Part shown: positions 19,370-54,109 of the stretch, one piece after another
Layout: each line of letters opens with the position of its first letter
How positions within the stretch are numbered: position 1 is the first letter of the stretch
NCBI GenBank assembly: GCA_001179505.1
Contig: CDMY01000592.1
Coordinates: 62,001-126,000, forward strand
Reading direction: 5' to 3'
DNA: 64,000 bases
Origin: Vitrella brassicaformis CCMP3155
Lineage: Eukaryota > Protista > Chromerida
The notes under the pieces: model-generated
The model's input: the letters and a program-made list of their open reading frames with translations, nothing else
What the model was told of the DNA's origin: nothing
The model's database searches: none
Position numbers and translations under genes: made by a program

Positions 19370-20219
19370 GGGGATGGCTGCGGAACATCATCGCGGCATT
19401 CCCGCGCACAAAGGAGTACATCCTCGACAATTAGCCCGACAAGAAAGTCGACAACAACGACGGCAGCGGTGGTGGCAAGGGCAAGAATGCCCGATGGCTG
19501 CCCAACATAAGTGCGGCATTCCCGCGCACCCATCGGTGGCTCCTTGACAAGTTTCCACACACAATGGCCAAGCTCGGTCTGGTACGATGAATAGATAGAT
19601 ACCCACGTGAATTAGTGTATGCCTGTCTTATCTCCCTTATGTGCAGAGGCACCCGCCCCCCGAACGAGAGCAGGTGGCCCCACCATACCCGCCACCGCCG
19701 CCATCACACGCCACGGCCGGGACGCTGCCCAGGAGAAGGGCTTGGCTGCTTGGAACTTTCAAGAATACGGCCAAACACCTAGGACTGGTAGGATGCTGCA
19801 CACACATTGAAGCAACACCTGTTCACATGCAGTCTTCGCCGCTTCTGTGCCGTTCCGTCCCTCTGCAGAAAGTCCCGTCGCCGCCAGCCCTCGAGAGCGA
19901 TGTGACGACGCCAGTGAGGTGGACGCCACTATATATTATGCAATAAATCCGAACAGCCCCGTCAAGTGCCCCTGCCTGTGTCTCGCTGTGTGTGTATGTG
20001 TTTCAGACATGGCAGTATCCCATTGCTGTCTACATTTTATATTTCGTCAACTCCTTTTGCCTTCACCCGCGCATCCCACGAGATGGCGAAGCAAGAGAAG
20101 GATCATGGAAGGTGGTCGAACTGTGGGATACACTAGCGAATGGACTGTCTCTCCTTGTTTACGGGTGCCGTTTGTGTGTGGTCTTTTCTCTCTTCGTGTA
20201 TGTATGTGCTGTAGTGTGC

Positions 20220-20255
<36 letters not shown>

Positions 20256-22607
20256 TTGTGCGTATGTGTGTGTCAGTTTTGGGCGAGCTGTTGCCCCGAC
20301 CTTTTGGCCCCAGCGACCCCCCCACACCATGCCGACGCCGCCCAAACGAATCCCTCTCTCACGGTGCGGGGGGGAGGGGCCCGAGGATCGACGACCGCTT
20401 CGCCATGGTCCGATGGGTAAGTTTACAACACAGACAGACAGCAGAAGGCCAAAGCCCACCAAGCAACTTATTTACCTACTCTCTCGGCTTGGCTTGACGA
20501 CCTGTGTCCTGCACGTGTATGCCTGTGTTTGGTTCAGCACGCCCCGCACCACATCGACTCGGCAAGCCCCGACAACAAAGTCGACAACAACGACGGCAGC
20601 GGTGGTGGCAAGGGCAAGAATGCCCGATGGCTGCCCAACATATGTGCGGCATTCCCGCGCACCCACCGGTGGCTTCTGGACAAGTTTCCGAACACAACGG
20701 CTACGTTGGGCCTGGTAGGATGAATAGATAGATACCCACGTGAATTAGTCTGTCTTATCTCGTTATGTGCAGCGAAATCGGCCGCCCAAACCGAAGCAGG
20801 CGCCGCCATATCCGCCACCACCGCCTTCCAACTCGACCGGGCCGCTGCCAAGGACGAGGAAATTTCTGCTCTCCACATTCAAAAATACGGCAAAACAACT
20901 GGCATTGGTAGGATGCTGCACATACATTGAAGGAACACTCCTGTGCCGTTCCGACCTTCCCATCACAGGCGCCAGCACCAGCATCTCCATCGCCCCAGCA
21001 GCAGATGACCCCGCCCAGCCAGCCGCCCCCACCTCCTTCGCCCCCACCACCACCACCCCCGCCCAAGACCAACGCCACGGGCCCAACGACTGGTACGAGG
21101 GAGGAGCCAAGACGGTGACGACTGTGATTGTGTTTGCTGTGTTACAATTTGTATGTTTGTATGTTTGTTGATTGCAATGCATGCAGGCAAGTCGTATAGC
21201 GACACGGTGAAGGACAGCGTCGTCAAGGAGGGCCCGGCAGGGGCAGCGCCGGTAGCTGCCACACTACCCAAGGTCAGAGAGAGAGTGAAGTGAGCTGAGT
21301 GAGGCGACATGTCCATCAGCCGATGGTTGCAAGAGCAAGACGACCCGATGGCTGGGAATATTCCCACGCACACAGAAGTACCTGCTCGACAATTTTCCAC
21401 ACACAATGGCAAACTTGGGCCTGGTACGATGAATAGATAGATACCCACGTGAATTGGTTTATGCCTGTCTTATCTCCCCTATGTGCAGAGGGAGCCGCCG
21501 CCCGAACGAGAGCAGGCGGCGCCCTACCCGCCACCACCGCCATCATCACAGACCGCCGCCAAGCCGCTGCCCACGGACCACAGCTTTCCTTCTCTCAACA
21601 TTCAAAAATACGGCGAAACATCTGAAATTGGTAGGATGCTGTACACACATTGAAGCAACACTCCAGAAGCAAGAATGGCCTTGCAACTGTGGATCATCAT
21701 TGGCTGCATCCATCGTGTTGCATCAGGACTCGACGTCGATGGACAGCCCTCTGCAGGCCACCCACACACTCGCATCGCCAGCACCAGCACCAGCACTCGC
21801 TGAACCACAGGCCGCCGATGGAGACCAAAGGCAAGGGGGAGCTACAGCAGATGCCGCCATGGACGCGCCACCTGCACCTGCAGGTCCAGAAGAAGCCGTA
21901 GAGGGCCAGCAGGCACCGGCCACAGGCACTGCTGCGGCAATGGAGGTGGAGGACGACCAACAGCAGCAGCGGTGGCGCGGCCTCGAGGCCCGACGTTTTG
22001 GCCCCAACGAGCCCCCCGACCCCCTGCCGACAAAGCCGCGAAGAGTCCCCATCTTGCCGCCGCCCGAGACGGTGCTGTCTGCCGTGGGTGCGGGGGGAAG
22101 GGGGCAGCAGCAGCCGCCGCAACAGCCACACCCACAGCCACAGCAGCAGCCACAGCCACAGCCACAGCAGCAGCCACAGCCTGCCGCCGTCAAAGGTACG
22201 CACACACACACACATGCACACACATCCCCCGCAACACAGCCATCTCTCCACCTGTCCATGCGTGTGTGTATGTCTCTCTCTCTCTGTGTGTGCGCCTCTC
22301 CCTCCCCCCTCCCCCTCTCACCCATTGCCTCACGTCAGCCATGGTAGAGTATTGGCTGAAGCAACAGGAGGCTCGGGCCGCCCAGCACCGGGAGGATCTG
22401 GCACAGCAGCAGCAGCATCACCGGCAGCAGATACGGCAGATGATGCAGCAGCAGGCCGAGATGCAGCAGCAGATGCTGGAGCAGCAGCAGGCGCTGCTCA
22501 GGCAGCACCCAATCTTCTCACGCCACTTTTCCAACCGGGGTATGTACCACACACATGCTCACAGACAGATGGACAGGCGGACGGACAGGCATGAGAGCGG
22601 GACTGTT

Positions 22608-22647
<40 letters not shown>

Positions 22648-25153
22648 TATGTGTCGGATTGCAGACGTCCAGGCCACCAGCGTACGCAGATGACTACATA
22701 AGACACGACGTCACACCAGGAGAGCTTATGTATGTCCTCTCTTTATCGCTGTATGTGTCCATGCAGCCAACGTCGGATGCGTCGGCTCAGGACGAGCGCA
22801 AGGTAAACCTCACACACATCCACCCACTCACTCACTCACTCACAACATGGCCACATCCATCCAAGTGCACCTGCCTGCGTCTGTGTGTGGGTTGTGTGTG
22901 TGCAGGTCGGTTCGGTTCCATGTAGGCCGACATACATGTCCTGTGTTCACAGATAGACAAGTGAGAGTTCTCTGTTTTTGCAGATCGCCGTCTACATTTT
23001 ATATTCGTCGGCACATCTCAACATCGATGCGCTGCCCCCTTCGCCCTCCCATTACATTACGGAGTCGCCATCTGGCTACATCTGGCTGCATCCTGCGAGT
23101 GGGCAGCGTGAGAAGGACCAAGACACTGCAATCCAATCGGTGTGCACACACCCAATGTGTCTGTTGCTGGTGTGCAGATCGTTGTCTACATGTTATATTT
23201 GACCGACTGATGACGACACTTCACCCGCACCGCCTTGGCTCGCCGTGTGCGCATCAAAGGTAAGCTGTCAAAATAGACTGATCGACTCCACTGGTATGTG
23301 TCTCGCGTCTGTGTCTTCAGAGCGATCGGTGTCTACATGTTATATCCTGTGGGCCCCTTCTACTTGATCCAAGATTGGCTGCTGTGCATCAGTGAGTTTA
23401 TCCCCGGCGGCCCCACAGGTGCGTGCGTAAGTGAGAGGCAAAAGAAGAGGCTCATCAACAAGAGCCCATGTCTCCTTTTCTTCTCCGTTTTTGTCTCCGC
23501 ATCTTTGGTGAATGACGAGGCCGATTGGTGAATGACGACAAAGATACCGTACCATATGGCCGAGACCACCCGACCTCGCCAGCAACCCCCCGACACCCTG
23601 CCGACGAAGCCGCGAAGAATTCCTCTCTCGCCGCCCGGGACGGTGCTGCGTGACGTGGGTTGCGAGGGGTATGTGAAGCTGTCAAGCTACGTCACGTGTC
23701 TGTGTGTCCAGGTCGATCGCTGTCTCCGTTTTATATCCGTGGACCTCTCCTTCTCAATTGCCGATGCACCTCATCTAAAAGCGCTTTGAAATAAATTCCT
23801 AGTAGAGGAACAACAGAAGAGACTCGTGAACATTTGCTCATGTCTCCTCTTTTCTCTGTTCGTCTCCGCATAATTGGCCGCTCCGGCGGCCCCCGAGAGA
23901 TCTATCTGCCAAGTGCCCGCTGGCGGCCTTTCATCGCGGCTCATGGCGGGCGACAGAGGTGCCGTTCTGAACGGCACCATTTCGCATAGCGATGCGATGG
24001 CTTGGAGAGATCATTGCGGCATTCCCGCCCACGCAGCAGTACCTCCACGACAATTTCCCAAGAACGACGGCCACGTTGGGCCTGGTACGATGAATAGATA
24101 GATACCCACGTGAATTGGTTTATGCCTGTCTTATCTCCTTTATGTGCAGAGGGAGCCCCCCCCAAACCAGAGCAGGCGGCACCCTACTCGCCACCACCGC
24201 CATCATCACAGACCGCCGCCAAGCCGCTGCCACGGACCACAGCTTTCCTTCTCTCAACATTCAAGAATACGGCGAAACATCTGAAATTGGTAGGATGCTG
24301 CACACACATTGAAGCAACACTCCAGAAGCAAGAATGGCCTTGCAACTGTGGATCATCATTGGCTGCATCCATCGTGTTGCATCAGGACTCGACGTCGACG
24401 ACTCCCTTCCTGTGTTCGGCATCGAGCCGCCCGAGCAAGCCCGTCGGCCGCTCGTCAAAGGGCACGCCCGTGCGCACACCGACCATGCCCACACCCACAT
24501 CGCACACACAAAAGGCCGGCCCCACACCATCGCCCCTGCCTCAGCCCGGCAGCAAACTGACCCCTCCCAGCAGAAAGGCCCTTTCGCCACACGAAGCGGC
24601 AAGGGTGCTCCTGCCGCCGCCGCCGCTGCTGCCGCTGCTAGTGGTGCCGCTGTGTCGCCTGTGATAGGGCCGTTGATGGAGTTTCCAGGGCGGAAGACGT
24701 CTAGACGACCCTCGTGTAAGGGAGGGAGACATGGGGGAGAGACAGATAGAAAAGATGTGTCGGTGTGCGGTGTGGTATGGGGGTGGGGATGCAATGGGTG
24801 CAGTTGGTGTGGCCGTCATGCCGGATGCCATTCCGCCCTCGATGCTCAAACGGCACATCGGTACCACACCACACGCAAGCCCGTCTGTCCCTCTCTCTCT
24901 CTCTCTCTCTCTCTCCCATACTCATCTGTCAATATGTGGACTCGGCAGACAACAACGACGGCAGCGGTGGTGGCAAGGGCAAGAATGCCCGATGGCTGCC
25001 CAACATATGTGCGGCATTCCCGCGCACCCATCGGTGGCTTCTCGACAGGTTTCCGAACACAACGGCCACGTTGGGCCTGGTACGATGAATAGATAGATAC
25101 CCACGTCAATTAGTGTATGTATGCCTGTCTTATCTCCCCTATGTGCAGAAAAA
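19370..25153 (+). repeat. Patchwork array of duplicated exon-intron modules (A/B motif pairs and other modules), partly pseudogenic
   Basis: Five copies of intron GTACGATGAATAGATAGATACCCACGT...TATGTGCAG start at 19582, 20715, 21424, 24085 and 25080. Each follows an exon ending FPRT..[WY]LLD.FP.T.A.LGL and precedes an exon encoding PYPPPPP...LPRT..[FW]LL.TFKNTAK.L.L (the last is cut by the gap). There is a premature TAG at 19432 and a +1 indel near 21570. Confidence 0.85.
24426..25153 (+). repeat. Segmental duplicate of the formin 3' region (38253-38981)
   Basis: Colinear and highly similar, but with substitutions and indels, e.g. ccacacgaagcggcaagg versus ccacccgaagacggcaagg. Runs into a gap. 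Confidence 0.9.
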
Positions 25154-25453
25154 NNNNNNNNNNNNNNNNNNNNNNNNNNNNNNNNNNNNNNNNNNNNNNN
25201 NNNNNNNNNNNNNNNNNNNNNNNNNNNNNNNNNNNNNNNNNNNNNNNNNNNNNNNNNNNNNNNNNNNNNNNNNNNNNNNNNNNNNNNNNNNNNNNNNNNN
25301 NNNNNNNNNNNNNNNNNNNNNNNNNNNNNNNNNNNNNNNNNNNNNNNNNNNNNNNNNNNNNNNNNNNNNNNNNNNNNNNNNNNNNNNNNNNNNNNNNNNN
25401 NNNNNNNNNNNNNNNNNNNNNNNNNNNNNNNNNNNNNNNNNNNNNNNNNNNNN
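25154..25453. other. Assembly gap (300 N)
   Basis: Run of N. Confidence 1.
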
Positions 25454-27341
25454 TACGCGTCAGGTTCTGGTGTGGACAGCCACGCGTGCCACAGGGCATT
25501 CCACTGCCAGAACTACTTCCTCAAGATCGACGCCCGTGACGGAGTCGAGAGGATCAGGGCCACCATACAGGGGCTGCAGCTGGGATGAGCTTCAGGCCGT
25601 CGGGCTGTTTGCTAAGCTGGCGGGTGATAAAGTGTCTATCGCCGCGTTGTACAGTGGCGGCGGTGGACGAGGAGGGTGCCGGGCTGGCTGTGTACACACA
25701 TGTTTGTGCTTGTCTATACGTGCGACTGACTGGGGGGCTGTCTCACGATGAATCGATCCATCGATCCATGGTAAGCAGGCAGGCAGGCAGGAGACTGCCT
25801 GACTGTGGTGTGCAGATGTGTGTGAGGCGGTGTGTTCTTTGCCGAGTCGGATCAAGGACGACTCATGTGCTGTGAGTGGGGTTATCCCGTGTAGTAAGTT
25901 TGCCTGCCAAGGCCTCCATCAGTCAGTGGCTTGTTCCATAATCCCAATTGGGAAGGTCTGGTCAGCTCACGCCACAGACACAAACACGGCAGTGACCGAC
26001 GACAGACAAGACGGCACACACAGACGAAAGCAGCACACACCATCAGACGCCGGAGGAACTGTGCCCTGCTGATCCAATCGTCCACCGACAGCGCCAGATG
26101 CGGCCCACTCGAAAGACAGTGAGTGAGCGAGAGACCGCAGCAAAGATGATAATTCCCAGTCCGCCATCCACCAGACCCGGCGCAATAGTCATCCTGCCGC
26201 AAGCAACGACAGACAGACAGACATGGAGTGAGTGAGACGGTCAGTCAGTCCGCTGGCTTCCGATCTATAATTGCCCTTACCTGCACGGTCCGCCGGGCAG
26301 TGACATGTCTGAGCATCTGGCGAGAAGCCCGATGCAAGGATGACACACCATGAGTTCAACGCTATCAGCTTCAGACAATTTGCACGCCCGATATCGCACC
26401 GATGATGAGCCGCTCTCGCTCTCGAGACTACTCCAGCGATACACACAAGTGCCAGTTTGAAGACAAACTTTATCTTGAGCTGCTGGTCGCCAAGAACGAC
26501 GGTGTCCCTCGCCGCATCATTGTTGTTGATCACACACTCGGGCAGCTCATCGGCCAGGCTTTCGAACGATCTGCTCTCTGACCTGCTGCTGGACCGACGC
26601 AAGCGTCAACGAGCCAGAGCCACCCAAAGAGTCCAGGACATTAGCACCCACGATTGTGGCGTAGGCGTTGATCTGCCGGCGCTTCTCGCTGCGGTTGCCG
26701 CAGTGTCCGGGCGACACATTTGGGGAGTCAGAGGGCGACCAGCAAGGCCAGGACGAGATGAATGTGCACCCACACAGACACGCACTCAACTGACTACTGC
26801 ATGGTTTCCATCCATCAGTGTACCACGGCGGTGAAGAGAGCGGAGTACCCCTCTTCCCCTGTAAAGCCACAGAGAAGTCCATTCATCCATCCTGTGAAGT
26901 GCCTCGGGCAGTCCACTGACCTGCAACACCCAACAGATGGCACACAAAGGGACAGAGAAATGAATCGCTGACTGCAGATCTCTGTGCAGCTCGTGATTGT
27001 GCGGTGCAGGGGGGTGATGTGGCGAGCTGGATGTGCCTCTTTTTCGTGGTGTTTGAGTTGTGTGCGCGTTACACGACGTTACGTTATACCGACGCCTGCC
27101 CTAACGCCCAATCTCCGCGCGGGAGAGAGAGAGAGAGAGGAAGAAAGGCAGCAGAGAGACTCACAAACGCACACAGGATGGCGACCAACACGCAGCCAGA
27201 AGGGCTCTCACTGCATCAGCTGACTTTTCTCTCTCTCTGTTCTGTGAAGCCGCCGTGATTTGGCTCCCGAGCTCACTTACCACACAGCGGATCAGCAACA
27301 GCGGCCTTCAAGCATCGCGTCTATTCGCACGGCTCACAGGC

Positions 27342-28795
27342 ATGAGGCCGCCCACGTCTGTCAGCGCCCCTCCTCCCGCCACGGCTGATCCCCCAGACAC
27401 AGACGTCCTCAGACAATCAGCTTCTGAATTGGACGTCTCGACGACAAGGTCAGCGAAGTCATCGAAGCATCAACCAAAGGCTCAAGGAGATGGCGAAGGC
27501 GGCGCTCGGCTCTCAGGCGTGTCCACCACCGTCTCGACATCGGTCTCCACCCCTGCAGTGGACGGCCGGGCTCCGCTTGGCGACGGGGATTTCGGCTGAG
27601 GAGGGCGATCTGTGGGGCTTTCTGGTGCTGCGGATTGGCTGTGTGACCTTGTGGCTGACGGACTACCCTCTGAGGCATTTCCTGCTCATCATCGGCCTCC
27701 TCCTGATCTATGCACTGTGGTCGTGGGGTGGTTTTAGTTTTATCTACTACCTTCTCGTTATCCTTGGGTATGCGAGGAGTTTGTTATTCGCTCCCGTGAT
27801 TCCCTTTGTGATTGTGATATGGACACCGCCGTCGCTGATGCTCTTGATTGGATTGGGAAGTCTGTGCGCGCCGCCTCTTTGGTGGGGCACTCGATGGCTC
27901 GTCTATTTCTCTATCGTTCTGACCATTGTCTATTCCGGGTTCATGTACTTATTCGCGGTTTCTAATTATCTCACTATGTCCGTTGAAAGCGATACCTTCG
28001 GTATGCGCTTCGGCGCACTGGCGTGGCTGGCTGGAGGGGCCCTTCTCCAGTTGGCTCTCTTCATTGTCATCTCGGAGCCGCGGCTCATCCGTGCATCGAC
28101 CAGCCCGACGGGTGGAAGGGAAATCGACGTCGATCACAACCGGCTCTCATGCTGCGGCCGTCGGGCAGAGTGGAGACCCTCGGCGACGGCCGAGTGGATA
28201 GCCAAGGCCCGGCAAACAGAGCCCTTCCTCTACCGCTCGGTGACCAAGCGGTGGCTCAAACGGATGGACTATCTCACCTTCATTCGGTTGTATAAACTGC
28301 TGGCCGTCGTGGGGATGGCCGTGGACTTCATTACCGATGCGGCGGTGGGGTTTCAAATGATCACCGGGCTTCCAGAAAGGCTATGGGGTCGTGCAAGATC
28401 CATCTGTATGGTCGATGGCAAATATCCGTGGAGTGATTATGAAAGGGAATGCATGGATACCACGATGAGCCGTCTGAAAAGTGAAGCGCAAGGCTATGGA
28501 GTTGTTGGCTTTGTCATCCTGGGCCTATCGCTGGCCGACTTCATATCGCTGTTCATTCACTACGGCATCCGCGGCTCTCCCTCAGTATGCCAGCACATCT
28601 AGATTGTCGCCTTTGCCCTCCTGGAAGTGCCCATCTTGGTGCTGAGAATTGTGTGGGCGATGGAGGCCAGCAATCCGACGGTCTTCATCGTATCTGCCTT
28701 CTTCACTCTGGTGACGGTTCTCTCTCGAGTCGGGTCGTTTGCGTGGAGCATGTCTATGCGGCGAAAGAGTGGATTGTCGACCGACTCTCAAGAGG
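27342..28795 (+). pseudogene. Intronless multi-pass membrane protein paralogue, disrupted
   Basis: Colinear with 47530-48870. A 1-nt frameshift near 27590 separates the leader MRPPTSVSAPP...LGDGD from AEEGDLWGFLVLRIG. A premature TAG at 28600-28602 replaces TGC in the paralogue, and homology resumes at IVAFALLEVPILVL. Confidence 0.8.
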
Positions 28796-30598
28796 TGAGA
28801 AGAGGAGGGAATGAGGACGTTGTGTGTCATTCCTCGTTGTCTTGTTTACTATGCACCAGGGAGCTCCATCGGTCGTGTGATGGACGGCACATTCTTGGGC
28901 ACTTGGAAGTGCTTGGGCGAAGTATGGTACTTCCTGCTGCTGCTGCTGATGGGACTGACAAGTGGCCGGCTGTCTGTTATCCTTCCAGTCAATCAGACAG
29001 GGAGGAAGGGAGCCAAACGATCGGTGGATTCCACCGCCAGCCGCAGGACCGAAGTGGCTGTGCGTACGGATCTACGGCTGTATACATGTGTGTGCAGCTC
29101 CATGCATGTCAGTCACGTGCTTGTTTGCCTGTTGTAGCACGAAGGGATGTAGTTTCATGCCTTTCAGCTGCTTGTCTTGCCTTGAGCCCCTTTCTTTCTT
29201 CTGGCTCATCGACATGTTCGTGTGACTGACTTGTTTCGCTGGTCGATCTGTGTGTCTTTCTGGATGGACGGCCGGTGGCTGGAAAGCGTGGATGGTGGAC
29301 GGATGTGACCGTGATTGATGTCTTGACAGCGAAGGTGCTGATGGTGTGATGTGGTGTGCATTGAGTGTATGAGGGCAGCGACGGTCTGTGCGACGACAGA
29401 CAGACAGACATGCACCCAACTTGAATGCGGTCCCGCTTTCCTGCCTCCCTGTACGTCTGTCTGTCTGCCTGTCTGTCTGTCGAGGTTGCTGTGGGTGCTG
29501 CGTGGGTGGGCTGACGAAGGGATGTGCGTGCGTACGATGGATGCCATGCTTTGACTGACCGGCCAGATGCGATGCGTGTGTGATGTCATGTGTGTGAGCG
29601 AGACAGTGAATGAGTGGTGTCCGTCCACCCATTTCCTGGAATACTGAATTCAGTCAGTCAGTCACTCAGTCAGTCAGTCGTCCGCGTGTCGGTCTCACAT
29701 ACCATCGGCAATCCACGAAGGAAGTCCACCAACAAGGAAGCAGCCAGCCGTATGCACACACACACACACACACACACGCCATTTCGCACATGCATCCACA
29801 CACGCAGCCATGGCCGAAGGGGCGCCTTATGTGTGTGGGTGTCTGTCTGTGTCTCATCCATCCATCCATCCGCTAATCCTGCCTGCGTGGCAACGTGGCT
29901 GGATGTTTGTGGGTCTGTCTGTCTGTGTGTGTATTGGTCTGTCTGTTCCATCGGCGTCACTCACCGGACAAAGGCAGTCAGTCAGTCATGGATCGGATGG
30001 ACGAGAGAGGTCAGTCATGAAAGCATGAACCGAGAAAGAGAGACACACACGGGCGGGGTGGATGGGTGGATGATGGGTGGAGCCGAGAAAAAGAAAGGGA
30101 GGCGCTGTGTGTGTGTGTAGTGTTGGCTGGTGTGGCGCTGAATGGATGGACGGACGTGAGGTAGAAGAAGGTCCTTGCTGCCTGCCCTGCTCTCCTCCCT
30201 CTCTCGTACTTGCACACAAACTGCCTCGGTCGATGTGATGTATCTGTGTGGGTGTTGGTGGTGGCTAACCTTTCTCTCTCTCTCTCTCTCTCTCTGTCCC
30301 AGGAAGAAACAAAACCAGTGAGAGAGTTCCTGTCATCCAATCCACACAACACGAACGGGCAGACAGACGACTGCAACACACAACGAACTCCCATGCTCAC
30401 AAGCAGCGCTGCACGACAGCCAACCAGCCTGACAGTGAGTGAGGCAGGCAGCCATGGGATCTCTCCACACACAATCACACACTCATTCATTCATTCAGTC
30501 GCCAATCCATCCATACTCCCCCCCCCGTCGGTGTGCTGCGTGTGTGGTGTGTAGTATGGAGTGTGTGTGTGTGATGGTGTGATGGTGTGATGGTCTGT

Positions 30599-33500
30599 CT
30601 ACTTGGCGCGGCCATCGCGGTCGCGCTTCTTGCCCTTGGACATGTGGGCGTAGTTGATGGGCTCCTGGCCCTTGTCCCGCTTCTCCCGCAGACGGGGCGA
30701 CACGCGCAGCCCCACCCCCTCCCCTCCGCCCCCGGCAGCCTGGTTGTTGCCCTGCGTGGGGCCACGACGGCCACGGCGGCCCCTGGAGCCACCGCCACCG
30801 CCCCCAGCAGCAGCAGCGGCGGCGGCGGCCGGTGCGGGGCCGTCGTCGACGTCCATGTCGTCGTTGTCATGGTTGTCGGGGAGGCCGTAGTCCACCTGGG
30901 GGAAGGGCGGGTTCGGCGGCATCACAGGAAACCCTACATGGATGGACGCACAGAGAGAGAGGGGGAGAGGGGGGGATGGGGTGGTGGGTGAGTCTCTCTC
31001 TCTGTGTCTCTCTCTCTGTGTGTGTATGGGTGTGTGGTGGGTGTGCGGTGGTTTGGGTGGTTTGTGTCTCCTCTACCATACGCAATACGTACCCTCAGGA
31101 TAGTTGGCCTGCACCTCGCCCAGGAAGTGCTGATACCTGCACACACGAACAAACGAACCAACGACAAGACCACACGACCACCACCACCACCACCACCACA
31201 ACAACAGACATGTTATGTTCGTGTGCCCATCCATCCCTTTGCCTGTCCTCACTCCTCCCTCACTGGTCGCTTACTGAGTCTTGTCAACGATGTCGAAGAA
31301 GGGATGGTACAACGCCTGCACAGCCGTGATGCGACGATCCGGCTGGTACGTCAACATGCTGACGCAACCAACACACAACCACAGCCACATCACACACATG
31401 ACCCCCACACACCACACCCCTCCGCCCCCCTGTGTGTGTGTCTGCTGCGTCTGCCCACCGAGTGAAGAGATCCACGGCCAGCGAGTTGCGGTCGATGTCG
31501 GTGCGGCCGTAGGGGCGGTACCCGGCGGCCTGGGAGATGGAGTCGTGGCTGCGGCGCAGCAGCGCCGTGATGCCGTCACGCGGGTCGCGCACAAACTTGG
31601 GGAAACGCTGTACACACACACACACGCGCAGAGAGAGAGAGAGATGAATGAGTTGTGTTGTGTTGTGTGTGAGGGGGGCACATTGAACTGGTCGGCGTAG
31701 GTGAACGCTTCGCTGCCCGGCCAGATGGCGTTGGTGGGGGTGCCCAGCGTGTTGAGCATCTTCATCAACGTCTCAAACTGACAGAAAGGTGGCAACAGAG
31801 ACACACAGGCAGATGGGCACACAGGCAGACGAGTGTGTGTGGTTTTTGGAGGTGCTGCGCACCTCAGTGTGGGCGTTGAAGGCCGGCATGCCGCTCGTCA
31901 ACTCTATGAAGATGCACCCAGTGGACCTGACGACGGCACATGACACACACACACCAGAATTGCACAGGCCCCCTCCGTCCCCCTCTCTCCATCCATCCCT
32001 CTCAACCCCCTCTCTCCCCCTCCCTCTCTCTGAGTGTTGTGTCTTTTGTCGGCTGACTGACCAGATGTCCAGGGCATAGGTGTACTTGAAGTTGGCCGGT
32101 CCCATGAACAACTCGGGCGGGCGGTACCTGCACACACACGAACACGCACATAGAGAGAGACACTGCTGAATGCACTGTGCGATGCTCTCTGTATGTGTGT
32201 GAGGGTGTGAGGGTGTAGGTGTTGAGTTGTGTGCTCACCACTGAGTGGCCACCTCGTGCGACATCAACTTATTCGGAATCGTCACCGTGCGAGCCAAACC
32301 TGGGGAGTGAATACACCACACACACATGGATGGATGGATGGACAGATCTGTGTGTTGCCACGGTGTGTGCGGTAGCTGACCGAAGTCGGCGATTTTGACG
32401 ATCCAGTCGGTGGTCATGAGGATGTTCTGCGGTTTCAGGTCACGGTGGATGACTGCACACACACACACACGCATACACACACACACAGGTACATCAGTAC
32501 ATGGCTGTGGATGGAAGAATGGTTGGTATGGTATGGTGTGTGCCATAGTGTCAGAGTGGCGTACGTCCTTTGCAGTGCATGTAGGCGATGCCGTTGAGTA
32601 TCTGGTACATCACGCGGGCCAACTGCTCCAGCGTCGGCACTGCACACACACACACACATACAAACCAACACGTGAGCCCCTGTCCCTCCCCCTCTCCCTC
32701 TCCCTCTCCCATGTGTTGTCATTGTGTGTGTGCGTACCTGTGTTCATGGGGAGTAGTTTGTTTGGGTTCCAGTGGGGGTGATTGATCTTGTTCTCCTTGG
32801 CACAGATGGTACGGAGGCGTCCGACGTCGCCGGCCTCGCACAGCTCGAAGATGAGGTACACGATGGTGGCCATGGGGTCCGAGGGGTCCATGCCGACCTT
32901 GTGGAGGGTGACGATGTTCATGTGGCCCCTCAACGCCATCAACGCATTCACCTGACACACACACACACACGGGGAAAGATGGCGGGGACGTGGGGGAGAT
33001 GACTTTGTTGTGGTGCGTCGTGTTGTGTGTGGGATTGCGTGTGGTCCAGGCCTCACCTCGCGCATCGTGGTGGATTCTATGCCTTCGCCCCCGTTCCACT
33101 TCTTCATCTGCACACAACACATCACACCATATCACACCGCACCGCGTGCACACACATGAAGAGATGCCATTGTCACCATGCATTCCCTCTCGGGATGATC
33201 AGTCAGTGGCGTGGTTACCTACCTTCTTGATGGCCAGGGGTGTGCCCTCGGGGACCTCAGTCAACGTGCGATTCGTCACGGCAGCTACACAGCCATACGT
33301 TCCTGCACACCAACAGAATACGCAGACAGAGGGAAAGGAAAAAAGAGTTACGCAATGGAGAGCGTCAAGAATATGCCGATGCATCCAGCCACGCGTCCAC
33401 GCATCCACACAGAGCAAAATGCACCATCCATCCGATGCATCCGACGCATTCCATCCCGGCTCCCTCAGTGCATATCACGTCCCACGCCGTGTCTCAGGCT

Positions 33501-33631
33501 TCCCCGGCTCTTTTGACCCTCCCTCTCGTCTCTTTGGGCTCACCTGATCCGAGCATACGGACGAAGTTGAAATTCTGGACCACATAGGGGTCGTGCTCCA
33601 TGTCGTTGGACTGCGCAAGGGCCTGCGCCAT
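30599..33631 (-). CDS. Cyclin-dependent kinase-like (cdc2-related, CMGC) protein kinase
   Basis: Spliced motifs: LGSGTYGCV, LAIKK, EGIESTTMREV (PSTAIRE position), VIHRDLKPQNIL, KIADFGLAR, HEVATQWYRPPE, ALDIWS, LGTPTNAIWPG, RITAVQALYHPFF. Two further exons extend to the stop at 30599. Confidence 0.93.
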
Positions 33632-33825
33632 CCTCAACAAACCAACAACTCGCAGAAGCCTTCTATACGGCCTTTTAGGCGGCTGATCGCGATACCGATC
33701 AGGCGGCCATACCCAGAGAGCGATGCAAAGGCCGCACAAGGACAACTCCAAACCAACTCCAAAACTGCCCCCAGCTCGCACAAACCCTGCGTTTACATCA
33801 AACCCCAGCGCAGTGAGTGAGGGAG

Positions 33826-36800
33826 ATGGCGGCCATGAGAGCTGACGGTAAGGCCGGCCAGCAGCAGCAAGAAGGGGAAGATGCCGAGGAAGATCTCCCC
33901 TCCCTCACGCCGCGCACTGCCACGCGGGAGCTGGATGAAGAGCGGGAGCGGCGGCGGAGGGCCGAGGTGCGGACGGAGCAGCTGAGCCGCTTTATCAAAC
34001 AGGCCGAGGCCGACGCCAAGAAGCGCGAGACCACCAACCGCCAGCTCGAGGCCGATCGGGACAACTGGAAGCGGAAGTGGAAGACCGAACTGGACAGAAT
34101 GCACAAGTAGGATAGATACACTGATGCAGGGAAGGTCCCTCTCTGTGCGCATGGAGGATGTGCGCGAGAATCTGACGGCGTGTGTGTTGTGTTGCTGGTT
34201 TTCGTGTGTGCAGGTTGCAGGCTGAGAGTGCGCGTCAGGTGGAGGCGGTGCAGCGGGACCTTCAGGGGCAGGTGGAGGCACTGCAAAAGCTACACACACA
34301 CAGGTGCATGCGGTCGCACAGCACTGCACGGGAGGGGAAGGCCGCGATTCTCCCTGAGCTTCTTCTGTCGTCCATGATGGTTGCGTGTCATTGTTCCTTG
34401 CCCCATTCTCTGTCTGCAGGGACCGTAACAGCCAACTCAGCCACCTGCTCAGGGTCAAGGATAGCACACAAGAACGGTACATGACACACACGCCACGCCA
34501 AGAGGGAGAAAGAAGAGATCCGACCACCACAATCCATGAGTGCCCCTGTTCCTTTGTTTCTTTGTTCTGTCAGCTTGGAGGCCGAGATCCACCGGCTGCA
34601 GGACCTCGTAAGCCCTACCACCACACACAACACACACGACACGATCCATCCTCTATGCTTCTCTGTCGCTCGATCAGCTCTCACACCAGACCAACACCAA
34701 CCCCGACACAAAGAGTGCCGAGAAAGCTCCAATTACCCCCCTCTCTCCCCCTCCCCCGCCCCCCGTCCACATCCCTCCCGAGGCCACACCGGCCTTCCAG
34801 GCCCTCAAAGCCGAGTACGATAGGACCCTCTCGTTCATCACAGGCACTCTGGGGCTGCCGGGCCCTCCGCAGCTGTACCAGTGGAGAGGCACCGTCACTC
34901 ACACAGGGGAGGGAGAGGGCAAAGGGTCATCGCAACAGCAGATTGGAGAGGGTGGTGGTGCGCCGGAGCCCTCTTCGGCAGATGGCGGCGTGCAGGCTGC
35001 TGCTGCTGCGGCTGCGGAGGCAAAGGGCAAGGCCGCACCGCCCAAAGGTGAGCAGTGGGTGGATTCAATGCGCTGGATGGACCCGTGTCGTGTGTTCTCT
35101 CCCTTCTACCTCAGGTCCTCCGCCAAAGTTCTCCGGCGCCCGTCCACCCAAGCTCCCATCGGTCAAGGCCCCCCCACCACCGCCCAAACATCCAGCTGGC
35201 GGCAAACGAGCCCCTCCCATCAGCAAGTCGGCAGACGCCGCCAACCGAGGCAAGAAGGCGCCCATGTCCGAGTGCGTCAACATCCAGTGGGGGACGGCGG
35301 GGGGCGCACCCCCGAGGGCCGACGTGGGCACAGAGGAGATATTGCGGCTGCAGCAGCAGGCTAAGTTCTCACAGGCTGGTGTCGGAGGAGGTCACAGTGG
35401 GGGCAAGGAGGAGGGCAGCGGCAAACATGCTGGTGGGGGTGGGGGTGGCGCTGGGGTTGGGAGTGGGGCTGGTACATCGGCTAAGGGTGGTCGGATGAGT
35501 GTGGGCGGGGCTGGGGCTGGCGGTGGCGCTGCTGGTGTGGGTGAGAAGGGGAGGGTGGTTGTGGATTTTGACCAGACGGTGAGGGACTTCCCCGAGGCTG
35601 TAGCCGCCCGACAGAGGTACGTATGTCTGTCTGTCGTCTGCGTAAGAGCGGTGGGTGGGTGATCCACGTCTGCATCATCATCTGTGCATCCGTATACACC
35701 ATCCATGTGTGCAGTTTGACGAAGCGCCAGCTCAACCCCATCACGCCATCCAGTACCGACGGGCGGGACGACACAGCCACACCATCTGACTGACTGACTA
35801 CGCGCTCTATGTGTGATGGTGTCGGTCGTGTCAGTCTTCGATTTGGACGAGGAGGGCGAGCGGCTGATGCAGGGCGTAGCGCAGGACCCGCGGCTCGTGG
35901 AACTCTTCAAACGAAAACCCACCAAGGCAGACAACGCACTACACACCACACCTCTTTCGCCTCAGACAAACACATGCATGCCTTTCTTTTTTTCTGCACA
36001 CTCAGGCTGCCCCTGATTCGTTTGCCGCTGGAGGGGCCAAGCCGCAGCGGTCGTCATGCCTCACCGACAAGGGACAGAAGCGATACGGTCGGCACACTCA
36101 TTCCCCCACCCCTCCCAAACAACACACCCGTGTTTCCACAGAGTGAGAGAGAGGTGTCTGTATGGTTGTGTGTGTGTGTGTGTGTGTGCAGAGGTAGCCC
36201 GTCAGCGCATCGCAATGACGGTTACGGCCCGTCTGCGGGGGTGCATGTCGAGCCGCGAGCACCCCCACTGGCTGCATGAGTTCAAGCGCCTGTTCCTCGA
36301 GTGTAACCTGGAGTTCCTCAACAAGGAGCTCATCAACTCACTCATGTGACAAGAGACACACACACACACACACGCATCTATGTGCTTCGGGGGCGTGTTG
36401 TAGGGATGCTGTGCCGAAGGATGAAGACATAGCGGCCGTGCTGCAGTACAAACAGGTGGGAGTCTGTCTGTCTGTCTGACCGTCGGCCTGCGCCTTATGC
36501 ATTCTGTCTCCTTCCCGCTCCCTCTATCATCGTCTCTGTATGTGTGAGTCTGTCAGGATCACCCGGGTGTGCCGCTGCTCGCTGCCGAGGAGTTCGTCTA
36601 CAACGTATGTGCGACGACCGACGCCACACACAAAGCTCGACACACACATCTGTGTGCCTTTGTGTGTGTGACTATGCGTCAGATGTCGACCATCCCGCGT
36701 CTGAAGGAGCGGCTGGAGTGCATGGCGTTCAAGCTGTACGCTGAGGACTCATTCAAGGAAACCATCCAGGTGCCCTCACACAGACAGAGATTCTCTTGTG

Positions 36801-39540
36801 TCCATTGGACGTACGCGCCTGGATGTGTGTATGTGTGCGCCAGTACATTGAGGACCAGCTGGCGGCTCTGGACATGCTGATGAAGAGCAAGAGGCTCCAC
36901 CACCTATTCCTCGTACTTACAGACACACACCCCTCCCCGTGTCATAGCTATGCGTCTGTGTGTGTGTGTGTAGGTGATAGTGGCGATCGGCAACAAGCTC
37001 AACGAGGGCACCACTCTCGGCAACAGACAGTGGTTCAGACTCAAAACACTCAAAATGGTGGGCAGGGCAGGCCAAAATACCCAAACAAACACCTGAATGA
37101 CATAGATGTACCCCTCCCCACCTGTGTGCAGTTGGGAGACACCAAGATGACCACGGCGGACAGGCGCGAGCGGCACGTGCTGCACTACCTCATCGAGACC
37201 TTCCCGTGGACGCGTAAGCCATCCGTGAACATACGACAGAAGAAGCAAGCCATCCGTCCATCCTTCCATCCATGTGAATGCCTTTGTGGCTGTGTGTGTG
37301 TGTGTGTGCAGGTGAGGTGTTGGATGAGAAGGACATGCGCATCCTCGCCAAGGCGCAGCAGCGTGCGTACCCCCCCCACACACACACACGGACGGCCGGC
37401 CGCACTTGTGGATGCATCTCTCTGTGTGTGTGTGTGTGTGTATGTGTGTCTGTGTGTGTCAGAGCACGTTGCGATGACCTACACGTTGGGCATGGACCAC
37501 ATCAACTCGTGGCTCGCCGTAGGCATCACAGCACTCGCCTATTCCCTCCCAGACATCTCACATCTTTCTTTCTTTCTCTCTGTCTGCCTGCACACCATCA
37601 ATCAGATCAAGGCAGAGTATCGGCAGGAGAGGCGGCGCAACTCCATGGCTCCCCACGAGGCCGACAAAAGGGACTGGTCAGTCAGCCCGTCAGTCAGCCG
37701 ACCAACCCTCTACCTCTCTCCCAACGCCTCCTTATGTGTGTTTGGTTTGCTCCATTCGTGTGTCAGTTTCCACCAGGTCATGGCCGACTTCCACAAGCGG
37801 AGCGTGTCGCAGGTCATCCAGATGGACCACAAGCTGGGCGAGCTCAGGGATGCCTACACGGCAGCCGTTCTCTACTTCGGCGACGTGCAGGGCTTCTTTC
37901 CTATAGATGCGGTGAGTGAGTGAGTCAGTACCACTCTCCTGGTCACCTGTGGTCTTCCACCCATGTGATTGTGCGTGTGTGTGTGTGTGTGATTGTGTGT
38001 GTGTGTGTGTGCAGAGGGGCGACGATCCCAACACGTGTAGCATGCGGCCGGACCTCTGCAAGACTGTCTACGACTTCCTCAAGGACCTCAGAAAAGCCGC
38101 ACACGACGTCAAGAAAGAGGAACAACACAAACAGGTAGGTGCCTTACCTTCCTGACACCCACGCCTCACATCACAACAACTAACCAACTCGTCCCTCTGT
38201 CTCTCTGCCGTGCAGGTCAAGAGGACCCCCACCGGCCCCCCTGACATCCCCCGCCGCCCGAGCAAGCCCGTCGGCCGCTCGTCAAAGGGCACCCCTGTGC
38301 GCACACCCACCATGCCCACACCCACATCGCACACACACAAGGCCGGCCCCACACCATCGCCCCTGCCTCAGCCCGGCAGCAAACTGACCCCTCCCAGCAG
38401 AAAGGCCCCTTCGCCACCCGAAGACGGCAAGGGTGCTCCTGCCGCCGCCGCTGCTAGTGGTGCTGCTAGTGGTGCTGCTGTGTCGCCTGTGTCGCCTGTG
38501 ATAGGGCCGTTGATGGAGTTTCCAGGGCGGAAGACGTCTAGACGACCCTCGTGTAAGGGAGACGTGGGGGGACAGACAGATAGAGAGATGCGTCTGTGTG
38601 TGGTGTGGGGGTGGGGATGCAATGGGTGCAGTTGGTGTGGCCGTCATGCCGGATGCCATTCCGCCCTCGATGCTCAAACGGCACATCGGTACCACACCAC
38701 ACGCAAGCCCGTCTGTCCCTCTCTCTCTCTCTCTCTCTCTCTCCCATACTCATCTGTCAATATGTGGACTCGGCAGACAACAACGACGGCAGCGGTGGTG
38801 GCAAGGGCAAGAATGCCCGATGGCTGCCCAACATATGTGCGGCATTCCCGCGCACCCATCGGTGGCTTCTCGACAGGTTTCCGAACACAACGGCCACGTT
38901 GGGCCTGGTACGATGAATAGATAGATACCCACGTCAATTAGTGTATGTATGCCTGTCTTATCTCCCCTATGTGCAGAAAAAACCGCCGCCTAAACCGGAG
39001 CAGGCGGCGCCCTACCCGCCACCACCACCAGCATCCCACGCCACGGCCGGGCCGCTGCCAAGGACGAGAGCATTTCTGCTCGCAACGTTCAAACAAACGG
39101 CCAAACATCTAAAATTGGTAGGATGCTGCACACACATTGAAGCAACACTCCAGAAGCAAGAATGGCCTTGCAACTGTGGATCATCATTGGCTGCATCCAT
39201 CGTGTTGCATCAGGACTCGACGTCGACGACGCCGCCCGAAGCGGAGCAGGTGGCGCAGCAGAGCACCCTGTGGCCGCACACAAAGAAGTACGTCCTCAAG
39301 AATTTCCCAAGAACCACGGCAAAGCTCGGCATGGTACGATGAATAGATAGATACCCACGTGAATTAGTGTATGCCTGCCTTATCTCCCTTATGTGCAGAG
39401 GCACCCGCCGCCCGAACGAGAGCAGGTGGCACCACCATACCCACCACCACCGCCATCGTCTTCAACCGCCGCTGCCACGAACGAGAGCATTCCTACTCTC
39501 AACGTTCAAGCAGACGGCAGCCCAGCTGCGCAACGACTGA
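33826..39540 (+). CDS. Formin (coiled-coil N-terminus, short FH1-like Pro-rich segment, FH2 domain) with a C-terminal extension of repeated motif exons
   Basis: FH2-like exons: ECVNIQW, AAEEFVYN/MSTIPRLKERLECMAFK, VIVAIGNKLNEGTTLG, FRLKTLKM/LGDTK, HVLHYL, KLGELRDAYTAAVLYFGD, TVYDFLKDLRKAAHDV. The FH2 call is firm; the 3' end after 38552 is inferred from frame-compatible GT-AG splicing. Confidence 0.85.
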
Positions 39541-39579: not shown

Positions 39580-40510
39580 TCACAGGGCGGGTCAGCCAAT
39601 GAGAGCTCGGGGGAAACTCCGTGCTCTATGGTGTCGTACGACGAGGAAGCTGCACACGGATTTGGCGGCGAGGCCGACAATGGCAGAGCAGGAGTGTCTG
39701 ATGCCGCGAGTACGGAGCATACGGACTCCAACCACGAGCTGATGGATCTCGAGATCCGAGAATCGGACAAGCCGAGAATCGACAAGGAGCCTCCGCGCGT
39801 CTCACTAAGGTCAGCCTGCCACAGACATGCACACACATACCCACAAAGATACAAGTGCGTTTGCAGGTACAAAGACGGACATGAGTACCGTGGCACCTTC
39901 AACGAACTGATTCGGCTCCTGGCTGTGTACGAAAAGCAGACCAAGGAGTCACAAGCACAGGTGGGCGGTGGGTAAGCACATCACCTGGGCTGGTCTCTTT
40001 GTGAGAGTGTGTGTGATATGTATGTGCAGACCAACATCACTGTTCGTTGGGAGGTTACACCGAACGGTCGCCGCACGGCCAACTTTCGCCTCCGCAAGGC
40101 CGAGACCGACGTGCGCTCCGTCGTAGGCAACGAAGTCAGAATCAAATACACTTACGACGGTACGTACGGAGGCATTCCCTCCACACACGTGTGCGCAAGA
40201 TGGTACGGTTGTGCGCTGTGTCAGATGGTGAGGTGTGGATGCGGGAGGGCCACGTCTGTGTATGTCTCTCTCTCTCTCTCTGTGTGCGCGCCCCTCCCTC
40301 CCCCCTCCCCCTCTCCCATGCCTCACGTCAGCCATCATGGAGTATATGCAGCAGCAGCACGAGGCCCGGGCCGCCACGCACCGCGAGGAGATGGCCGACT
40401 TGAACCGCAAGCATCAGGAGGAGATACAGTGGATGATGCAGCAGCAGGCCCAGATGCAGCAGCAGATGCAGCAGCAGAAGGCCCTGCTCATGCAGCACCT
40501 ACAGCAGGCA
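39580..40510 (+). CDS. Hypothetical multi-exon protein or fragment ending in a Q-rich exon shared with 22339-22540
   Basis: Exon-like blocks GGSANESSGE...RVSLR, YKDGHEYRGTFNELIRLLAVYEKQ, TNITVRWEVTPNGRRTANFRLRK and AIMEYMQQQHEARAATHRE, separated by GT-AG introns. Start and end are uncertain. Confidence 0.45.
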
Positions 40511-49402: not shown

Positions 49403-49745
49403 CGCGACTGGCTCCCCCTGTATGGCTNNNNNNNNNNNNNNNNNNNNNNNNNNNNNNNNNNNNNNNNNNNNNNNNNNNNNNNNNNNNNNNNNNNNNNNNN
49501 NNNNNNNNNNNNNNNNNNNNNNNNNNNNNNNNNNNNNNNNNNNNNNNNNNNNNNNNNNNNNNNNNNNNNNNNNNNNNNNNNNNNNNNNNNNNNNNNNNNN
49601 NNNNNNNNNNNNNNNNNNNNNNNNNNNNNNNNNNNNNNNNNNNNNNNNNNNNNNNNNNNNNNNNNNNNNNNNNNNNNNNNNNNNNNNNNNNNNNNNNNNN
49701 NNNNNNNNNNNNNNNNNNNNNNNNNNNCAGACAATCATTCGCGCT
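49403..49745 (-). repeat. Inverted copy of the ~600-bp element, interrupted by a gap
   Basis: 49403-49427 cgcgactggctccccctgtatggct is the reverse complement of the ends at 51432 and 54109. 49728-49745 cagacaatcattcgcgct is the reverse complement of 53468-53485. Confidence 0.75.
49428..49727. other. Assembly gap (300 N)
   Basis: Run of N. Confidence 1.
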
Positions 49746-50819: not shown

Positions 50820-51432
50820 ATTGGTCAGACAGAATTGGATGAAGAATATCTCGCCAACCAGAGTGAGTGGGGTGATGATGTTGGCAATGGATTGATTGCC
50901 CTTCGAGTGACGGTTCAGATGCGCCGGACGCGGTCCGTGTCTGTCAAGTCACTGCAGAGAAAGCGGTAGGTCAGATACACAGTGGTCAGACAGAATTGAG
51001 TGAGGAATATCTCACGAACCAGAGTGAGTGAGTTGATCATGTTTGAAATGACTTGACAGTCCTTTGAGTGGGCGTTCAAATGCGCTCAGCGCGGTGGTCA
51101 CAGCTGCTTTGGTTGCCGAGAACGGAGCGCTGTTAGAAGGGTTCCCATTGTGAAAGAACGTGACCGAGCGAGGAGCTGCTGCTTTGTGTGTGAGAGGCTC
51201 TCACATGGGCGGTTCGCATTTGCTTTTGATCATCTGGGTGGGCTGCTTCTCTGCAATTTTATGTGGGTCAACTGCCAAATGGGGGCCTGCACGTCGAGAT
51301 TCTCGACATCGTCGAATGGACCCCTGGTGTATACATCCGATTTGACCCTTCACTCAAAGCGGTTAAAGTTTGCCTAGTGCGAAGAGGCTGCTTACTACCG
51401 CCTGAGCAGCCATACAGGGGGAGCCAGTCGCG
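50820..51432 (+). repeat. ~600-bp non-coding repeat element, copy with internal sub-repeats
   Basis: Near-identical to 53503-54109, from attggtcagacagaattgg to gagccagtcgcg. The internal unit gtcaagtcac...ggtcagacagaatt...gaatatctc...accagagtgagtg occurs twice. Confidence 0.9.
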
Positions 51433-53167: not shown

Positions 53168-53467
53168 NNNNNNNNNNNNNNNNNNNNNNNNNNNNNNNNN
53201 NNNNNNNNNNNNNNNNNNNNNNNNNNNNNNNNNNNNNNNNNNNNNNNNNNNNNNNNNNNNNNNNNNNNNNNNNNNNNNNNNNNNNNNNNNNNNNNNNNNN
53301 NNNNNNNNNNNNNNNNNNNNNNNNNNNNNNNNNNNNNNNNNNNNNNNNNNNNNNNNNNNNNNNNNNNNNNNNNNNNNNNNNNNNNNNNNNNNNNNNNNNN
53401 NNNNNNNNNNNNNNNNNNNNNNNNNNNNNNNNNNNNNNNNNNNNNNNNNNNNNNNNNNNNNNNNNNN
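53168..53467. other. Assembly gap (300 N)
   Basis: Run of N. Confidence 1.
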
Positions 53468-54109
53468 AGCGCGAATGATTGTCTGTATGAATGTACTGAC
53501 TCATTGGTCAGACAGAATTGGATGAGGAATATCTCGCCATCCAGAGTGAGTGGGGTGATGATGTTGGCAATGGATTGATTGCCCTTCGAGTGACGGTTCA
53601 GATGCGCCGGACGCGGTCCGTGTCTGTCAAGTCACTGCAGAGAAAGCGGTAGGTCAGATACACAGTGGTCAGACAGAATTGAGTGAGGAATATCTCACGA
53701 ACCAGAGTGAGTGAGCTGATAATCTTTGAGGTGACTTGACAGTGGGCGTTCAGATGCGCTCAGCGCGGTGGTCACAGCTGCTTTGGTTGCCGAGAACGGA
53801 GCGCTGTTAGAAGGGTTCCCATTGTGAAAGAACGTGACCGAGCGAGGAGCTGCTGCTTTGTGTGTGAGAGGCTCTCACATGGGCGGTTCACATTTGCTTT
53901 TGATCATCTGGGTGGGCTGCTTCTCTGCAATTTTATGTAAGTGGGTCAACTGCCAAATGGGGGCCTGCACGTCGAGATTCTCGACATCGTCGAATGGACC
54001 CCTGGTGTATCATCCGATTTGACCCTTCACTCAAAGCGGTTAAAGTTTGCCTAGTGCGGAGAGGCTGCTTACTACCGCCTGAGCAGCCATACAGGGGGAG
54101 CCAGTCGCG
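53468..54109 (+). repeat. ~600-bp non-coding repeat element, second direct copy
   Basis: Near-identical to 50820-51432 and ends at the same motif, gccatacagggggagccagtcgcg. Confidence 0.9.

Follow-up and report, generated by a model that had tools for sequence, protein, structure and literature searches.

The Argiope MaSp2 gene is built of repeat units with two exons and two introns each; its two alternating intron types are homogenised (97.6% similar on average) and bear evidence of gene conversion, and its describers were aware of no further eukaryotic gene in which two homogenised intron types alternate (PMC9779670). In Nephila Flag, according to the passage of PMC3563967 that cites Hayashi and Lewis 2000, the introns hardly differ within the gene and show stronger conservation than its repetitive exons. 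The invasive intronic elements of Amoebophrya are near-identical short introns in many unrelated genes (PMC7789003). The window analysed here is a stretch of 64,000 nucleotides (nt) from the chromerid Vitrella brassicaformis CCMP3155 (C592:62001-126000; G+C content ~57%; assembly CDMY01000001-1064 (PMC4501334)) that contains repeated copies of a short two-exon, two-intron module. The module family is a clean, small, non-animal example of introns outlasting exons, in which introns stay ~94% identical over three genes against a difference of 40% at silent exon sites, and it would be a second case of two alternating homogenised intron types, in an alveolate alga.

The Vitrella family resembles MaSp2 in having two exons and two introns per unit, two alternating intron types and a conversion signal, with introns at 94% identity. 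It differs in that MaSp2 exons are homogenised, whereas the Vitrella exons, close to saturation at silent positions, reach only 75% (exon A) and 77% (exon B) identity, with a proportion of synonymous differences (pS) of ~0.4. Moreover, MaSp2 has dozens of units in one gene, whereas Vitrella has 9-10 units over three genes, one of them inverted, and introns differ between genes in Argiope, whereas the Vitrella genes have common intron versions. Near-identical introns that are better conserved than exons are a feature common to Flag, as the cited passage describes it, and to Vitrella; this Flag-type variant, with introns above exons in conservation, fits the Vitrella family better than the MaSp2 type. 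In that account, however, the exons of Flag are simple repeats rich in glycine, which slippage would readily explain, whereas Vitrella exon A is non-repetitive. A further parallel is the major histocompatibility complex (MHC), where recombination or conversion makes the non-coding parts alike and leaves selected exon differences in place, but the MHC case concerns alleles under balancing selection with a ratio of non-synonymous to synonymous substitution rates (dN/dS) >1 at binding sites, and no such signal is found in Vitrella. Introners and introner-like elements also place near-identical short introns at several places in a genome; those lie in many unrelated genes, whereas the Vitrella intron occupies one homologous position of one local family, including a diverged paralogue.

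Introns more conserved than the exons they separate

The module consists of exon A, intron 1, exon B and intron 2, in that order. Seven copies (m1 to m7; Table 1) lie in the window, two more (m8 and m9) in an inverted paralogous locus upstream of it, and a diverged tenth copy (m10) in another gene; all ten have the identical layout, with both donors in phase 0. Intron 1 is 65 nt long (58 nt in m2, 69 nt in m5 and m6) and, m10 aside, occurs nine times in the genome, always on scaffold C592, against a chance expectation of 0 in 100 shuffles. The intron-1 and intron-2 cores have no match elsewhere in the 72.7-Mb genome. Exon B comprises 45-47 codons and is proline-rich. A related motif of ~22 residues (…F-P/K-x-T-x-A/K-x-L-x-L) closes both exon A and exon B, and a GTA(C/G)GATG donor comes directly after it. 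The module therefore gives the impression of an ancient doublet of a single unit of motif plus intron.

To judge from the sequence, both introns of this Vitrella-specific module are genuine spliceosomal introns. Intron 1 can be regarded as real because it has GT..AG ends, an in-frame stop and a length that is not a multiple of three, because the frames joined by its removal have a ratio of non-synonymous to synonymous differences (pN/pS) <1 in both flanking exons, and because the deposited models splice introns 1 and 2 at exactly these sites in m1, m2, m6 and m7. The deposited Vitrella models were produced by Augustus with RNA-seq intron hints (PMC4501334).

All statistics exclude m5 and are based on eight independent copies; for distance counts, one base of m3 exon B was removed and an N was inserted at the m4 deletion. 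Mean pairwise identity is 75% (58-95) over the last 66 nt of exon A, 94% (90-98) over intron 1, 77% (71-96) over exon B and 94% (88-100) over the first 33 nt of intron 2, with nucleotide diversities of 0.26, 0.046, 0.23 and 0.058, respectively; intron 2 of m3, m4 and m6 is 99-100% identical. Pooled Nei-Gojobori estimates are pS 0.39, pN 0.21 and pN/pS 0.55 for exon A and pS 0.42, pN 0.18 and pN/pS 0.42 for exon B, against a proportion of differences of 0.045 in intron 1 and 0.058 in intron 2. The introns are ~nine times less diverged than the adjoining silent sites, and the similar divergence of introns and synonymous sites that the initial annotation had raised as a counter-possibility was not seen. 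Where a fourfold degenerate codon encodes one and the same amino acid throughout the copies, the third position is variable in 17 of 20 cases, compared with 8 of 65 columns in intron 1 (Fisher 2.7e-9) and 6 of 33 in intron 2 (Fisher 2.2e-6).

Across the whole family, the diversity profile falls at the splice junctions. Two singletons are the only variation among nine copies in the first 31 nt of intron 1, and the first 28 nt after the GTA of intron 2 are nearly invariant. In every comparison, within or between loci, intron 1 differs at 1-4 of 65 positions. Flanks differ by 6-9% substitutions (0.063-0.089) between the inverted locus and the locus at 17.5-22.6 kb, and by 18% in the only alignable flank of the 22-kb and 40-kb loci. 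The copies are old, because silent exon sites are 40% different.

For the pair m1 and m7, which had drawn attention to the family, the reported single difference in 65 intron positions and 27 differences in the 66 exon nt upstream were both recovered, as was the near-identity of the seven intron copies in the window (90-100%). The 27 differences divide into 8 synonymous and 19 non-synonymous by Nei-Gojobori, rather than including only 6 synonymous ones as counted before. The stretch of identity between the two copies (19566-19705 and 39318-39457; 94.3% over 140 nt) does continue 59 nt into exon B, but it begins ~16 nt before the donor and not, as had been proposed, at the donor itself.

Mosaic history and blocks of identity

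Copy m1 is a mosaic. Its exon A is of the W-type, like that of m2, m6 and m8, and from intron 1 through exon B to intron 2 it resembles m9 and m7; the sites that it has in common with m2 versus m9 number 12:4 in exon A and 2:38 in exon B (Fisher 9e-7). In approximately unbiased (AU) tests, the exon B data reject the exon-A clade (m1, m2, m6, m8) with p=0.002, and the exon A data tested against the clade (m1, m9) give p=0.06. Directly upstream of the complete W-type exon A of m1, a truncated Y-type exon A is joined to it non-homologously, resulting in an in-frame TAG. This relic best matches m4 exon A (48/60 identical) and is missing the final 28 nt as well as the donor. The last 16-20 nt of m1 exon A are again m7-like, which places the swapped piece inside exon A rather than ending in the intron: the left junction is non-homologous and the right junction lies ~16-20 nt inside the exon. 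The annotated coding sequence of CEM25063.1 begins only at ATG 19564, within this exon.

Apart from m1, the two exons give broadly concordant trees, in which m2, m8 and m6 form one group, m7 goes with m9, and m3 and m4 are compatible. The proposal that different A exons are swapped onto a constant platform of intron and exon B thus applies to one clear event, in m1, but the junctions of that event are not in the intron, and the phylogenies of exons A and B are otherwise largely congruent. The tree of the introns has roughly the shape of the exon B tree, with branches ~ten-fold shorter.

Pairwise identity profiles, with positions counted from the intron-1 donor, place high-identity blocks at -25 to +245 for m1-m9, -14 to +108 for both m1-m7 and m7-m9, 0 to +300 for m3-m4, and -155 to about +25 for m2-m8-m6. 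The blocks are 120-380 nt long and their ends vary by pair; each holds an intron, and the zone in which they overlap is intron 1. Copies m4 and m6 have in common a perfectly identical block of 119 nt, made up of 6 nt before the intron-2 donor, the 96-nt intron and 17 nt of the next exon, whereas 32/141 positions differ in exon B directly upstream of it (Fisher 4.5e-7). Perfectly identical blocks overrun the intron borders into exons and stop at rearrangement points. A Sawyer-type permutation test, which uses polymorphic sites only and is therefore insensitive to constraint, picked out m3-m4 (global P=0.0003) and m1-m9 (P=0.017) as pairs with significant shared runs, in line with the recombination that had been suspected. 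Reading of the alignment gave all four combinations for two intron-1 variants. The idea of the intron as an anchor of recombination or conversion gains from the presence of an intron in every high-identity block, but does not extend to the right junction of m1, which is inside exon A.

Proposed exchange through introns and alternative explanations

We see about an even chance that the introns are homogenised in concerted evolution through ectopic conversion over short tracts or through unequal recombination, for which they provide the shared homology; the spider Flag and MaSp2 genes are precedents. Old module copies would still exchange short DNA stretches by ectopic gene conversion or unequal recombination. 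These exchanges would start in, end in or pass through the intron cores, because the cores are the only high-identity stretches common to all copies, and would homogenise the introns family-wide; each exon would be exchanged only within its own subtype, or never, and would keep its older divergence under ordinary purifying selection. We infer that conversion rather than constraint keeps the introns alike. The block-wise identity of pairs, the 376 identical nt of m5 and m6 next to 340 nt that differ by ~5%, the permutation tests, the conflict and the relic in m1, the four combinations of intron-1 variants, the tolerated indels (intron lengths of 58, 65, 69 and 81 nt) and the intron-2 tails, which are unrelated between subgroups, all point to exchange, and leave it an evenly balanced proposition. 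The confinement of near-identity to the nine clustered copies also counts for exchange, the introns of the distant m10 being only 71-78% identical to the cluster copies. Several observations weigh on the other side. Despite a conserved intron core on either side, exon B (141 nt, pS 0.42) stays unhomogenised, and the stretch common between subgroups is only ~31-65 nt, which is short for conversion tracts. The m10 introns are still clearly alignable (z 6.5 and 8.1) although m10 silent sites are near saturation (pS 0.6-0.7), which homogenisation within the cluster does not explain, and an intron tree similar to the exon B tree with ~ten-fold shorter branches is what slow evolution also gives.

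Purifying selection on the intron sequence itself, the chief alternative and one that the initial annotation had also raised, is possible, if rather unlikely. The ~31-nt cores after the unusual donors (GTACGA, GTAGGA) would then be cis-elements, such as splicing enhancers that pair the right sites among short look-alike exons, or binding sites for some other factor. Constraint accords with the fall of diversity at the splice junctions in the family-wide profile, with the near-invariance of the beginnings of both introns, with m10 introns that are better conserved than m10 exons and far better than silent sites, and with the rough congruence of the intron and exon B trees, as well as with the unhomogenised exon B between the cores and the very short stretch common to subgroups. 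It would, however, require that ~85-90% of 65 nt be constrained, above the level of the neighbouring coding sequence (pN 0.18-0.21), in introns that tolerate length changes of -7, +4 and +16 nt and the outright replacement of intron-2 tails, and the identical blocks extend into exons and end at rearrangement points. Nor do searches for an RNA function support it: introns 1 and 2, folded as single sequences, do no better than shuffles (z -1.0 to -1.3), an Rfam search of 18-41 kb with E up to 1 gave no match inside the introns and only weak chance matches elsewhere, and an intron 1-intron 2 duplex looping out exon B is no better than in shuffles, a 7-nt complement seen by eye being within chance. 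We consider it doubtful that the ~31-nt cores are functional cis-elements under near-complete purifying selection with conversion merely a side effect; if true, this would mean a dedicated intronic code that steers splicing, or another RNA or DNA process, among look-alike short exons in a chromerid. The family offers a tractable test of whether shared stretches of 31-65 nt can sustain concerted evolution or whether the introns hold unrecognised splicing signals. Faster mutation of the exons, by slippage or another exon-limited process in GC-rich, proline-codon-rich exons, with young copies whose introns show neutral divergence, appears improbable. Intron divergence (0.045-0.058) is indeed near the substitution divergence (0.063-0.089) between the flanks of the two youngest loci, the otherwise close pairs m2-m8 (exon B), m3-m4 (exon A) and m1-m9 (exon A) each have an exon that is 23-30% diverged and lacks a close donor among the extant copies, and slippage has been proposed for Flag exons versus introns (PMC3563967). 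Yet exon A is non-repetitive and still has a pS of 0.39, changes at fourfold sites involve all four bases, a pN/pS of 0.4-0.55 resembles long-term purifying selection, and a nine-fold step in rate exactly at the splice sites would be without known mechanism.

The remaining explanations fare worse than exchange through the introns. Spread or replacement of the intron as a unit, introner-like or by reverse splicing, into pre-existing diverged exons would give near-identical introns between diverged exons and sharp diversity edges at the junctions. But the whole genome has only nine copies of the intron, each in the homologous position of a single module family, inspection revealed no terminal inverted repeats or target duplications, identity blocks reach into exons, and m10 has a diverged homologous intron at the same site, from which it follows that the intron is ancestral; intron-specific copying is therefore very unlikely and already largely refuted. 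Diversifying selection, which the initial annotation had considered for the A exons, could push exons apart while neutral introns stay alike. In venom genes (PLA2, conotoxins), exon evolution is accelerated and introns are conserved among paralogues, with dN/dS >1. The Vitrella family is similar in that its introns outconserve its exons among paralogues, the exons being far more diverged, but pN/pS is well below 1 in both exons (0.4-0.55) and the excess of divergence is equally strong at silent sites. Because of these ratios and of the variability of 17/20 fourfold sites with an invariant amino acid, diversifying selection is rejected at the resolution of these short exons and seems scarcely credible. 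Collapsed or cross-corrected repeat copies in the assembly could likewise give look-alike introns, and m5 is identical to m6 at 100% up to a scaffold gap, one of four 300-N gaps in the window. The other eight copies, however, have their own substitutions and indels and unique flanks, and a 65-nt repeat is shorter than the reads of this assembly (100-nt paired, PMC4501334), which makes such an artefact highly improbable. Collapse of the whole family was ruled out by the copy-specific variants and is retained for m5 only.

Copy m5 is cut 5 nt into exon B by a run of N (25154-25453). Immediately before the gap, a stretch of 376 nt (302 nt on the upstream side of the m5 donor and 74 nt after it) is 100% identical to 38606-38981 in the m6 region, so the m5 intron is not independent evidence. 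The preceding 340 nt are ~95% identical, with indels, and because this upstream part differs from the m6 region, m5 is probably a real separate copy. The sequence past the gap (25454 onward) has no module homology.

Module features and host genes

Table 1. Module copies and related features (window positions unless given for C592)
Feature	Position	Strand	Remarks
Relic, truncated exon A	19372..19432	+	positions -89 to -29 of Y-type exon A; then in-frame TAG
m1 exon A, W-type	19433..19581	+	82-85% identical to exon A of m2, m6, m8
m1 intron 1	19582..19646	+	65 nt, GT..AG, in-frame stop
m1 exon B	19647..19787	+	47 codons, proline-rich, FKNTAKHLGL-type end motif; 96% identical to m9 exon B
m1 intron 2	19788..19868	+	81 nt; conserved core is first 33 nt
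m2 exon A	20538..20714	+	100% match to residues 156-214 of P0003
m2 intron 1	20715..20772	+	58 nt, 7 nt shorter, GTAGG donor
m2 exon B	20773..20907	+	45 codons
m2 intron 2	20908..20968	+	61 nt; tail common only to m8
m3 exon A	21346..21423	+	by homology; skipped by annotated model
m3 intron 1	21424..21488	+	
m3 exon B	21489..21630	+	142 nt; 1-nt insertion shifts frame of last third
m3 intron 2	21631..21726	+	96 nt; 1 difference from intron 2 of m4 and m6
m4 exon A	23995..24084	+	by homology
m4 intron 1	24085..24149	+	
m4 exon B	24150..24289	+	140 nt; 1-nt deletion near start; in frame only with acceptor AG 2 nt downstream
m4 intron 2	24290..24385	+	96 nt; identical to m6 intron 2, inside 119-nt identical block
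m5	24948..25153	+	exon A 24948-25079, intron 1 25080-25148, first 5 nt of exon B; N gap 25154-25453 cuts rest
m6 exon A	38776..38907	+	in FH2 protein CEM25070.1
m6 intron 1	38908..38976	+	69 nt, 4-nt insertion
m6 exon B	38977..39117	+	
m6 intron 2	39118..39213	+	96 nt, open, in frame
m7 exon A, Y-type	39214..39333	+	40 codons
m7 intron 1	39334..39398	+	1 mismatch to m1
m7 exon B, as annotated	39399..39503	+	first 59 nt m1-like, remainder diverged
m8 intron 1	C592:57087-57151	-	inverted paralogous locus, ~5 kb upstream of window
m9 intron 1	C592:56487-56551	-	inverted paralogous locus, ~5 kb upstream of window
m10, diverged tenth copy	C592:1100-1410		another gene, ~60 kb upstream of window

Single-base exon indels occur in three modules: an insertion in m3 exon B, a deletion in m4 exon B and a deletion in m9 exon A (L004 minus strand, ~1000-965). 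They are recent changes or assembly errors, because the codons downstream are still intact in the shifted frame. Intron 1 ends in CAG followed by A in all copies but m2 and m10, and the next base is G (CAGAG) in m1, m3, m4, m7, m8 and m9. The second AG of CAGAG, used as acceptor, restores the frame in m4 and m9, and the CEM25051.1 model uses it for m9.

The length of intron 2 is a multiple of three (81, 96 or 75 nt, the last at L011 1404-1478) and the intron is open in frame in most copies, so that its retention keeps the frame; the CEM25051.1 model reads through intron 2 of m9. A coding use of intron 2 was considered and rejected: between m1 and m10, silent and replacement changes are about equal by hand count, so the intron does not look protein-constrained. 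An intron-hosted structured RNA (small nucleolar RNA or mirtron) was likewise rejected, in view of the lack of a stable fold and of an Rfam match in the introns.

The module occurs in three neighbouring genes, of which one is an FH2/formin gene and the other two are paralogous to its C-terminal part. The formin CEM25070.1 (P0001; 1422 residues) has its FH2 domain (PF02181) at residues 544-838, with 111.9 bits (cut-off 34.8), and m6 and m7 lie C-terminal to it. The paralogues of the C-terminal part are CEM25063.1, with m1, m2 and exon B of m3, and CEM25051.1, with m9; neither has a Pfam domain. The models of both paralogues are built over frameshifted or mosaic modules, which is a warning for their annotation. 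CEM25070.1 also matches the Pfam family UPF1_1B_dom downstream of the modules (residues 1258-1318, window ~40000-40200; 38.4 bits, cut-off 28.5), so that either its domain combination is unusual or the gene model is a fusion.

Among 1.84 billion representative proteins searched with HMMER, the only matches were the three proteins just named, all from scaffold C592, and on this basis the module is lineage-specific. No module relatives were found among proteins of 65-208 residues, and two metagenome scans with the intron cores gave no match.

Other repeats in the window

Further repeats are interleaved with the modules or lie near them. The AT-rich 15-mer GTCTACATKTTATAT occurs four times between modules on the + strand (20028-20042, 22990-23004, 23184-23198 and 23331-23345), where 0 copies are expected, and also near position 650 of L011. 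Each copy shortly follows a CAG and one is annotated as coding (…LSTFYIS…); the 15-mer may be another small repeated exon or a signal. An exon-like repeat (…RP-x-GP-x-(E/D)PP…P-x-(K/R)-P-(R/K)-R…) lies interspersed among the modules at 20290-20410, 21990-22100 and 23586-23669, and once more in the inverted locus.

A related glutamine-rich exon (…EYWLKQQEARAA…) ends all three loci, at 22338-22540, at 40297-40480 and in the inverted upstream locus. Between the 22-kb and 40-kb loci, the 50 intron nt before this exon are 90% identical and the exon itself is 72-76% identical, the same intron-over-exon tendency as in the modules.

Elsewhere in the window, 50820-51432 and 53503-54109 are 97-99% identical and 2.68 kb apart. 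Each lies shortly after an N gap (49428-49727 and 53168-53467), and the pair is either a recent tandem duplication or an assembly duplicate.

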